A stretch of DNA of 64,000 bases, taken from NCBI RefSeq assembly GCF_040938485.1, contig NW_027271056.1, positions 992,001-1,056,000 on the forward strand. The letters run 5' to 3'. Below are positions 47,854-53,884 of this stretch, piece by piece. Position numbers and translations under genes: made by a program. Source of the DNA: Diadema antillarum. Taxonomy: Eukaryota. Positions within the stretch are counted from its first letter, which is position 1. Every line of letters begins with the position of its first letter. The notes beneath the pieces are model-generated. The model was not told the origin of the DNA and did no database searches. It was given only the letters and a program-made list of their open reading frames with translations.

Positions 47854-50350
47854 ATGGGTGCTGAAGTAAGCAGTAATCGTGATTCTAACCGAAAGCCCAC
47901 GGTATCACCACGAACCGGGAGAGGGAGGGGTGATCGAAAACTCGACAAGCCATCAGAACGGGCAAGATTGTGAGTAATTTTATCATCTTTTTTTTTAAAG
48001 GGATTATTGTAATAAAATGCCAAACTCTGCATTCAAATACCTCCATTTGATATTAGTTTGTCAAAGCGGCTCGGTATGGTATACCTACTCTCTAGGGGTT
48101 CTGCACAGTACAGGAAGAAGAAGAAGAAGGAGGAGAAGAAGAAGAAGAAGAAGAAGAAGAAGAAGGTAAATCAACAAAATTAATGACGTGATTAAAATGA
48201 GAGGCTCAACAGAAATCATGACATTTAATATTAATTTTCGCCTTTTTTGTATACAATTTGGAAAGTAATTACCTTTATTTTCCTTTCGGGGGATTTTCCA
48301 AATAGGCTAAAAGAACTATAGTAACTATATTGGTTCTCTTTTACGGCTCGGAAAAAAAGGTGTGTGTGAAAAAGAGAAGAAAACATCTTGAAACTGTTTT
48401 TGCACAATAATACTATAAGCCTACACAGAAAGCAACCTGGCTGTCACGCCCTGTTCTGGTAATCGGGGAAATGAAAAGTATCTGTTTGTTTTTGTTTTTG
48501 TTTTTTTTCCGTTTGTCTGCATGGTGCGCGATGCATTGGCAACTAAATTTCACAGTGCGTTACCCTCTGCCTTTCGTATATAATGACCTCGTCGATCGAT
48601 TGAGAAGTGTTATCATGATATCTATATGGTAAAAACCGACACAAAAGGAAAAGCTGACATCAAAGACTTTTATATCATCTGTCATTCATGACTTTTATAT
48701 GTGCACATAATGAATTCAAATGAAAGGAAAGGTTATCATATATCCTGAAAACAATGCACAATTTTGCAATAGAACCGAAAGAAAAATTGAAGCAATGAAA
48801 AAGAGTGATCTACTAAGAAGTGTGTAAAGTTTGCATGTCGCTCTACATCGTAGATCACTCGAAAGAAAAAAAAATAAGAGCAATATCCAAGTATTGAATA
48901 CAAGCCATAACACCTTTATACCGTAAGATTTGTCTTTTCTTTTCTTTTCTTTTTTTTTAACGAAAAAAAATACGACCAGTTATCTTTTGTTTGTTTGGCT
49001 GTTGCACCCTTTCAGCGGCAACAACAATGTGTATCCTGTGGAAAATCTCCATCGCTTTCGCGACGGTCCTTCCCGCCTTTTTCCGACCCATTCTCAACAG
49101 TCGTCTGCGGTCTCAAACGAAACCATCCTGACTCTGGAAGACAAACTTGAAGGTATACAGAGAAAATTAGTACATTCTAATCACACATCATGATGAAGTT
49201 CATCATGGGGTCCTTCCAATTTCGAGAGAATATTCAGCGTATAGTATAAGGTGAAACTCCACGTCATGCTCAGGTTGTTCAAATTTTATGAAATTCTTCG
49301 GTCGAGATGTTTTCATTGCAACTGATTGACAAATTGCCATACATCGACGTATATAAGCACTAAATTGATCAGTGTTTTAGTAGTAGCCATGATAAAAATC
49401 GTGGGCGTACATACTCGAGCAGGATTCGAAACTACGACCTCCTACGATCGCCTGTCCCGGGATCAGGGACATGCCTGTCCCGTGATCAGGGCAATCATAA
49501 AGTTATGTTCGATTCGTATGTTTGATTTCGCCCAAAGTTTTGGGCTACAGTACCCTGCAGGTTTCTTAAATCACGTTCTGTTCATAAAAACAAAACATAG
49601 CTCAACAAGAACATTGACGGAACCACCCACTTTTCCTTTAGAGAAGAGGTTTAATCTTCGTTCTTGTTATCAAACTTTTACAGTCCCTGTCCTAGTGCGG
49701 ATCCAACAGTTAGCCAGAATAATCACAATATTTCCAACATTGATGTGTGCTAACTCAATAAACTTAATGCAAGAAGTTGCTCTTCTCTTACAATGGTACT
49801 GTAAGACTTCGCATAATCTTTCAACAGATTTATTGACAAAAAAGCAGTCATTCTGCTTCTCTCTCTCCCTCTCTTCTTTCTTTCTTTCTTTATTTCGTTC
49901 TCATTTTTTTCTCTCTGTCTTCCCTTCTTAACGCTCCTTCTTCCTCTGTCATAATCTAAAACTGCATTCTCTTTATTATTATTTTTTTCGTGTTTTGTTT
50001 TGGGTGTGAAAGCGGAGTCATTGGACAGGTCGACGGGTCGCGGTAGAGTGGCCTACATCAAGGCATCGCAGAAGGCCCGAGGGAAATCCACCACTAAACC
50101 TCGAAAAATCCCACACCAAGCAATGGTGAATTCCATTAGCGTGGTTGGCGGGGGTCTAGGGGGTACCACGCCCATGTCCACCATTGGCACCGGGGTAATT
50201 CTGTCGCCTCCAAAAGCGGATGGTAACACCGGCACAGGATCATCGATAGCCCCAGTCGAACAAAAAGTAGCATTAGATGGGCAGTCTACAACGGTGAGGG
50301 CGTTATTCATACTTGCGAAATAATACACTTTGGGGTTTTGGGGGGGTTTG

Positions 50351-50381
<31 letters not shown>

Positions 50382-53300: not shown

Positions 53301-53884
53301 TTTATTCGATAACTTGTCACTTTGACTTGTCTTGCATTAACTTTATGACCCTTCCCTCTGTTTATTTGTTTTCTTTTGCTTAATTCCCAACCACAAATAA
53401 ACGTTCACATCGCAATAAGTTCTCATTCCAAACAGCATTTAATACTATGATCTGATTTTGAAAACACTTAAAGATATATAAAGGTCTTGGACCACAGTAA
53501 TGCTACAGGACCTACCTCGCTGTCATGACGGACAGGGCCATCACTATGATTGACTATACCACCAGATCTTTCGAAATTTTTTTCAGTGTCCGATTCCTTT
53601 CGTTATCTTTTTTTATACTAAAAATAAAGCATTATAACTATGATCGTCTGTGGCAGGTTCTGAAACATACAGCATTGAGCCAGATGGAGGACAAAATCAC
53701 CAGAGAGGAGAAAAAGAAGAATGAGAAATTGCGATTCGAAGACCAAGGAGGCGTTCAAACACCAAAGGCCCGAACCCAGGCATACACCTTGCCGAAATCC
53801 CTCCATGTCATTCCCGAGCAGCCCGAAGACGAGTCGAAGAATCCCGAAGACTACTCGTATTCCGACATCAATATCTATTTTTGA
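47854..53884 (+). CDS. Predicted novel 4-exon gene encoding a ~253-aa low-complexity/disordered protein with an N-terminal MGxxxS myristoylation signal
   Basis: Exons (plus): 47854-47969 (ATG..AGA TT|gtgagt), 49016-49152 (ttcag|C..GAA G|gtatac), 50013-50293 (gaaag|CG..ACG|gtgagg), 53657-53884 (ggcag|GTT..TTT TGA). Intron phases 2, 1, 0 join without a stop; 762 nt. Each exon is a GC-richer island in AT-rich DNA. No family recognised. Extra exons, for example in the 51564-51693 gap, cannot be excluded, and the exon-4 acceptor has a weak pyrimidine tract. Confidence 0.7.
51780..51896 (+). repeat. 21-bp degenerate minisatellite, about 5 units
   Basis: Units starting 51801, 51822, 51843, 51864, 51885 (GCATTC(G/A)AATTCA(C/T)T(A/G)TC(G/T)(G/T)A consensus). 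Confidence 0.7.
52197..52430 (+). mobile_element. 5'-truncated copy of the same SINE family as 44876-45228
   Basis: Matches the body and tail of that SINE (GTCCCTCGGATAGGACATAA...GAAGTGGTCCCACC..ACATCCAACTGGACCCCA..GAAGACCAGC..GCTGAATATGGGCTATCCAGCCATCTTC..GATGGAAAATGA); ends in (CAAA)n. Confidence 0.85.

Follow-up and report, generated by a model that had tools for sequence, protein, structure and literature searches.

Do four separate coding islands in a stretch of sea urchin DNA belong to one real gene, and if so, what kind of protein does that gene encode? The stretch comprises 64,000 nucleotides (nt) of Diadema antillarum (contig NW_027271056.1, positions 992,001 to 1,056,000, forward strand; hereafter the window), and a first-pass annotation made from the letters alone had joined the islands into a single open reading frame (ORF), described as a hidden orphan gene for a lineage-restricted, mostly disordered protein. 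Here we explore this gene by comparison with related genomes and protein collections. By these comparisons its ortholog is D. setosum XP_072174071.1, Strongylocentrotus purpuratus LOC105445949 is a more distant homolog, and the gene is under purifying selection. As an overall explanation we favour a real four-exon gene whose product could act as a membrane-anchored adaptor, with a probability of about 0.8. The parts of this explanation carry different weights: that we deal with a real, conserved protein-coding gene is almost certain, and that its product works as a lipid-anchored disordered adaptor is a tentative proposal.

Local translation of the window joins the four plus-strand exons (Table 1) into 762 nt, corresponding to 253 codons and a TGA stop. 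All internal exon borders are GT/AG with acceptors preceded by pyrimidine tracts, and no other in-frame ATG lies between the start ATG at 47854 and a stop located 26 codons upstream of it (at 47776). The four-exon model of the first pass could be reproduced to the base, which includes coordinates, GT donors, AG acceptors, the phases 2, 1 and 0 of introns 1, 2 and 3, and the 253-residue translation. The GC-richer exon islands it had pointed out were recovered as well, with a GC content of 0.47-0.55 in the exons versus 0.34-0.38 in the introns, and it had rightly remarked that the ORF listing of the window shows the gene only as fragments and misses the 38-codon exon 1. Raw sequence hence sufficed to read a spliced animal gene correctly, since every border given was exact.

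The D. setosum locus (OZ188199.1, assembly GCA_964275005.2) provides the closest comparison. In coordinates of the excised locus its four coding exons lie at 10001-10116, 11108-11244, 12248-12528 and 16166-16393, with lengths (116, 137, 281 and 228 nt) and GT/AG borders the same as in the window, and their joined translation equals XP_072174071.1 exactly. The two genes also share an esterase neighbour on the opposite strand; they differ in intron lengths, the gene spanning 6393 nt in D. setosum and 6031 nt here. The exons align at 91-97% identity with 5, 4, 21 and 8 mismatches in exons 1 to 4, which amounts to 38 in 762 nt, and with no indel. By codon position the 38 differences are distributed as 10, 10 and 18. 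The Nei-Gojobori method yields a synonymous rate (dS) of 0.120 and a nonsynonymous rate (dN) of 0.031, hence a dN/dS of 0.26, and the excess of synonymous changes has a binomial P of 1.5e-4. At the protein level 237 of 253 residues are identical, the 16 replacements being mostly located in variable parts of exons 2 to 4. Identity in the non-coding DNA around the exons is 77-87%, and each aligned block there contains 10-71 gap openings. The first pass had proposed to look for a dN/dS below 1 and for frameshifts or stops in the exons of related species: the former was found and the latter are absent from the intact D. setosum ORF.

More distant homologues were obtained from protein collections. 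A HMMER search (phmmer) with exon 3 alone, a single exon being an insensitive query, was performed against all 1.84 billion representative proteins. It identified residues 86-178 of XP_072174071.1 (253 amino acids (aa), 91% identity, E = 1.9e-43), a RefSeq entry annotated as "uncharacterized protein [Diadema setosum]", and as second match a 252-aa ORF on contig 33995 of the public run SRR6173504 (E = 1.1e-6). This contig of 1312 nt is intronless and holds an uninterrupted ORF between non-coding flanks of 190 and 363 nt, with an in-frame stop nine codons ahead of the MGA start. The absence of introns, the flanks resembling untranslated regions (UTRs) and the upstream stop make it look like a spliced mRNA. 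Two full-length searches, for which XP_072174071.1 rather than the joined window model was used, drew on words of 5 residues in common together with a length filter, in a collection whose animal coverage looks patchy; the word search by a profile of both homologues added isoforms X1 and X2 of S. purpuratus LOC105445949 (240 and 239 aa; XP_011680434.1 / XP_011680433.1; E = 2.9e-38). This brings the total found in the protein collections searched to four proteins. A word search with only exon 4 as query gave no match, as was to be expected from the length filter, by which proteins of 253 aa are excluded. The resulting family profile matches all four exons of the window with E-values from 7e-34 to 2e-6, the latter for exon 1, and when used to search the D. 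antillarum genome for paralogs it identified none besides a near-identical second copy of the locus.

"Hidden" and "orphan" are therefore not the right words for a gene with an annotated ortholog in D. setosum and a homolog in S. purpuratus. The term "lineage-restricted" fits the collections covered, in which shallow searches returned only sea urchin or sea-urchin-like matches. The D. antillarum draft assembly (~11x depth, 84% duplicated BUSCOs) has already been annotated by NCBI (bioRxiv 10.64898/2026.05.24.727502), and the gene of the window has probably been annotated there too. The family itself is unnamed, pipelines having labelled it as uncharacterized in both D. setosum and S. purpuratus. 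The gene as such is no discovery; what is added is one more ortholog in a small uncharacterized family that purifying selection has maintained over the deep divergence of sea urchins.

That the model represents a chance ORF, a pseudogene or a non-coding transcript could be argued from the lack of a known domain, from the partly simple composition of exon 3, and from the second copy of the locus. The latter was found upon searching the assembly (1,754,659,819 bases in 2963 contigs) on contig C848, where it is collinear with the window and 92-99% identical over tens of kilobases. Its exons 1 to 3 are identical to those of the window and the copies are very similar around exons 2 to 4; as assembled, exon 4 of C848 has three indels (-1, +2 and +1) in the interval C848:222290-222520, by which the frame is lost after K-L-R-F-E-D and the conserved tail is removed. 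These differences are, however, one-sided and mostly indels. C848:220332-223907 was compared with window positions 51694-55268, and D. setosum served as outgroup. Within 51694-54666 there are 12 indels and four substitutions, and C848 carries the derived state in every one of them and the window in none; within 53217-54666 the copies differ by nine indels and no substitution. Since real alleles would differ mainly by substitutions spread over both copies, we read the C848 differences as consensus noise, which suggests that the same haplotype was assembled twice, with a noisy consensus on C848. The gene is present once per assembled haplotype copy. Given the lack of indels in an otherwise indel-rich background, the dN/dS, and the homologues of similar length with an almost invariant tail in distant sea urchins, a chance ORF or decaying pseudogene is ruled out as far as sequence comparison reaches, and we consider this whole class of explanations extremely improbable.

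Table 1. Features of the four-exon gene, its introns and its product. Positions are nucleotides of the window unless given as residues of the 253-residue protein.
Feature	Position	Strand	Description
Upstream block	47556-47853	+	Putative promoter and 5' UTR; highly conserved with D. setosum (at least 93% identity in 60-nt windows across 47556-48009); no in-frame ATG from the stop at 47776 to 47854
Exon 1, coding part	47854-47969	+	116 nt, 38 codons and 2 nt; start codon, MGAEVS N-terminus, basic region; donor GTGAGT
Intron 1	47970-49015	+	Phase 2; GC 0.34; (AAG)n microsatellite at about 48117-48165
Exon 2	49016-49152	+	137 nt
Intron 2	49153-50012	+	Phase 1; SINE-like repeat 49315-49395 and chance 201-aa ORF
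Exon 3	50013-50293	+	281 nt; basic RGRV-Y-K...KAR and K-I-x-H-Q-x-x-VNS motifs, then variable Gly/Thr/Ser-rich stretch
Intron 3	50294-53656	+	Phase 0; orthologous D. setosum intron without coding exon
Assembly gap	51564-51693		130 N within intron 3; no exon touched
Foldback/transposon-like element	51694-53196		About 1.5 kb; degenerate inverted arms 51694-52006 and 52889-53196; conserved in D. setosum
Exon 4	53657-53884	+	228 nt including TGA; predicted charged helix and acidic Tyr-rich C-terminal tail ending YF
N-terminal motif	residues 1-6		M1-G2-A3-x-x-S6; invariant in three lineages
Central basic motif	residues 94-107		R-G-R-[VL]-[AS]-Y-x-K ... A-R
VNS motif	residues 116-125		K-x-x-x-x-x-x-V-N-S
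Helix motif	residues 196-204		E-K-x-x-N-E-x-L-R
C-terminal tail	exon 4		R-T-Q ... L-P-x-x-L-x-V-I-P-E-Q-P-E-x-E-S-x-x-P-E-x-Y-S-Y-S-x-I-N-x-Y-F

Another alternative is that the four-exon model is real and incomplete, with extra or alternative exons hidden in the assembly gap, in conserved blocks of intron 3 or upstream. Many blocks of intron 3 match D. setosum at 93% identity or more, the intron contains the run of 130 N, and the two S. purpuratus isoforms are one residue apart near the exon 2/3 junction. Nevertheless, the three lineages compared yield proteins of 239-253 residues from an MGA start to a YF end followed by a stop, the mRNA-like contig of SRR6173504 has its in-frame stop just before the start, and the D. 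setosum protein corresponds to exactly four exons. Furthermore, non-coding conservation is high everywhere between the two close species, so that the conserved blocks of intron 3 form no evidence of exons. The gap begins 1271 nt past the donor of exon 3 and ends 1963 nt ahead of the acceptor of exon 4; since it lies this deep in the intron, the reading frame across it is irrelevant. Its flanks are collinear and in the same orientation in the D. setosum locus (locus coordinates to 13917 and from 14018), where no exon of the coding sequence falls in the matching interval, and they are collinear on C848 too, with a spacing of 133 nt. All in all we hold an incomplete model to be improbable.

The gap borders the foldback element, the left arm of which begins exactly at the right gap edge. 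The arms are built of short 'GCATTCGAATTCA'-like sub-repeats, and this repeat structure is a likely reason for the gap.

What protein does the four-exon gene encode? We aligned the Diadema protein with the SRR6173504 ORF and the S. purpuratus protein, which gives three lineages. The S. purpuratus protein shares MGAxxS, R-G-R-V-x-Y ... K-A-R, VNS, the E-K-x-x-N-E-x-L-R helix and the tail, here VIPEQPE ... YSYSDINVYF, although it is only 35-39% identical, counts 239-240 residues and is shorter in the region matching exon 2. The SRR6173504 ORF has the MGA start, the YF end and every conserved motif, at 37-40% identity to Diadema and 42% to S. purpuratus. The 61 invariant positions of the alignment cluster in five places (Table 1), with 25 of 37 positions invariant in the tail as compared to 36 of 216 elsewhere. 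The two traits that mark the family, MGAxxS and VIPEQPE ... YSYS-x-IN-x-YF, are both encoded in the window, by exons 1 and 4.

The protein lacks Cys and Trp and has an isoelectric point (pI) of 9.6, with values of 9.6-10.3 across the homologues. Its charge is polarized: the net charge is +6 over the first 45 and -5 over the last 30 residues, and ranges from +4 to +6 and from -4 to -7, respectively, across the three lineages. AlphaFold2, run on the three-lineage alignment, gave a mean predicted local distance difference test (pLDDT) score of 49 and a predicted template modelling (pTM) score of 0.17; the single confident element is a helix at 177-209, with a pLDDT of 78-89 over residues 181-200. 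The Atlas model of XP_072174071.1 has a pLDDT of 0.45. Pfam searches with the four exons, XP_072174071.1 and the SRR6173504 ORF gave nothing above the cut-offs, and 2C_adapt, EFG_C and DUF7165 were dismissed as sub-threshold noise. PDB searches, for which either the profile of the family or the C-terminal 49 residues served as query, had best E-values of 1.1-1.3. The ESM Atlas offered no usable match by features and only structural neighbours with a template modelling (TM) score of at most 0.25. As modelled, the protein is predicted to be mostly disordered with one helix, in agreement with the first pass, which had recognised no domain and expected disorder.

The conserved N-terminus points to a possible mode of action. 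The N-myristoylation pattern (PROSITE PS00008) consists of Gly2 after Met, a small uncharged residue at position 3, a Ser/Thr-type residue at position 6 and no Pro at position 7. The starts M-G-A-E-V-S-S (window and D. setosum), M-G-A-Q-E-S-K (SRR6173504 ORF) and M-G-A-H-E-S-T (S. purpuratus, internal to the annotated model) all fit it. A Met-Gly-Ala-x-x-Ser start followed by a basic region could make the protein a substrate of N-myristoyltransferase, and myristate together with the basic residues would then attach it to the cytosolic membrane face. Proteins such as Src or MARCKS are kept at the inner membrane face by these two signals, myristate and a basic stretch. Disorder interspersed with patches of invariant residues is a typical property of adaptors that act via short docking motifs. 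Such docking sites may be formed here by the conserved short motifs: first of all by the acidic C-terminal tail, and also by the charged helix and the basic motif at the centre. This would render the protein a membrane-tethered adaptor. The tail holds Y-S-[DE]-I, which has the form of a Y-x-x-hydrophobic sorting or SH2-type site, and ends with hydrophobic x-Y-F; it would be the first choice for the main interface.

A functional analogy is offered by MARCKS and BASP1, which are myristoylated, basic, intrinsically disordered proteins associated with membranes. What the Diadema protein has in common with them is a Met-Gly start that fits the myristoylation pattern, a basic character of its N-terminal region and predicted disorder, but detectable sequence similarity, a Pfam match to their families and an effector-domain-like Lys cluster are absent here, and the Diadema protein has an acidic, Tyr-rich C-terminal tail of its own. 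Hence no membership is claimed.

Several points weigh against the combination of gene and adaptor. The case for the splice junctions in the window is one from orthology, the C848 copy of exon 4 is frameshifted as described above, and N-myristoylation is put forward on a pattern match. The S. purpuratus model begins eight residues before MGA, which would bury the Gly if that start is used. Finally, a literature search on LOC105445949 and SRR6173504 returned no paper on the family.

The same S. purpuratus start, if real, would suit the main rival of the adaptor, a soluble, basic, disordered regulator without lipid anchor, which might for instance bind an enzyme via the central basic motif and the tail and either inhibit or target it. 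The protein being strongly basic overall is consistent with this, and so is the invariance of the central R-G-R-V-x-Y ... K-A-R motif, which we take to be loosely like kinase pseudosubstrates. R-R-S-x-S sites are found in the SRR6173504 ORF and in the S. purpuratus protein, the latter carrying R-R-S-I-S as well as R-T-Q-S. In Diadema, however, neither the R-R-S sites nor the Ser of R-T-Q-S are present, and all three lineages retain MGAxxS, its ATG being the first in-frame one after a stop in three sequences. We regard a soluble regulator as possible and rather unlikely.

The lipid-anchored adaptor is preferred, yet as a mechanism on its own it is likewise doubtful. Its most specific version, a sea-urchin- or echinoderm-specific adaptor in which the tail would be an undescribed docking motif, for example of a Tyr-phosphorylated or sorting type, that connects membranes with a partner in signalling or trafficking, is unlikely and should be taken as speculation. 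Even so, the conserved tail and the putative lipid anchor make the family, as a candidate lineage-specific adaptor, amenable to study.

Known short motifs were compared by eye and rejected. A PP1 RVxF site would have Tyr in place of the required Phe/Trp, matches to calcineurin PxIxIT and LxVP are inexact, and an LC8 TQT site reads T-Q-A or T-Q-S. NPxY has the wrong spacing and a non-conserved Asn, the Ser of 14-3-3 and AMPK sites is not conserved in Diadema, and the Asp of TRAF PxQxxD is Glu in S. purpuratus.

Concerning the surroundings of the gene, the esterase named by the first pass is present upstream: its exons within 37196-41494 on the minus strand each have a Pfam COesterase match with an E-value of about 1e-12, and D. 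setosum has a 600-aa COesterase ortholog at the same position and in the same orientation (upstream, minus strand). Downstream of the gene, the side on which the first pass had placed cubilin, the only candidate coding block within the window is 63713-63949 (plus strand), which has no Pfam match; the 10 kb downstream of the D. setosum ortholog contain no called gene. Candidate poly(A) signals are ATTAAA at 54328 and AATAAA at 55418. Further upstream, the minus-strand ORFs 10370-10771, 19177-19464 and 25176-25532 appear by eye to be exons of SLC22-type organic ion transporters, with a large loop on the extracellular side and a membrane segment at the C-terminus, and possibly represent a tandem pair; Pfam gave no match for the two of these fragments that were searched.

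Some repeats other than the foldback element were observed in the introns. An Rfam scan of 47000-55000 gave no match. A repeat of about 84 nt occurs in intron 2 (49315-49395) and again 8.8 kb downstream (58124-58207), as well as on C848; it contains a tRNA box-B-like 'GGATTCGAAAC' and looks like a short interspersed nuclear element (SINE). The 201-aa ORF at 49326-49931 overlaps this SINE-like repeat and was, as a gene candidate, judged to be a chance ORF. A long poly-T run (50338-50381) lies just past the donor of exon 3, and the two assembled copies differ in length around the (AAG)n microsatellite of intron 1.

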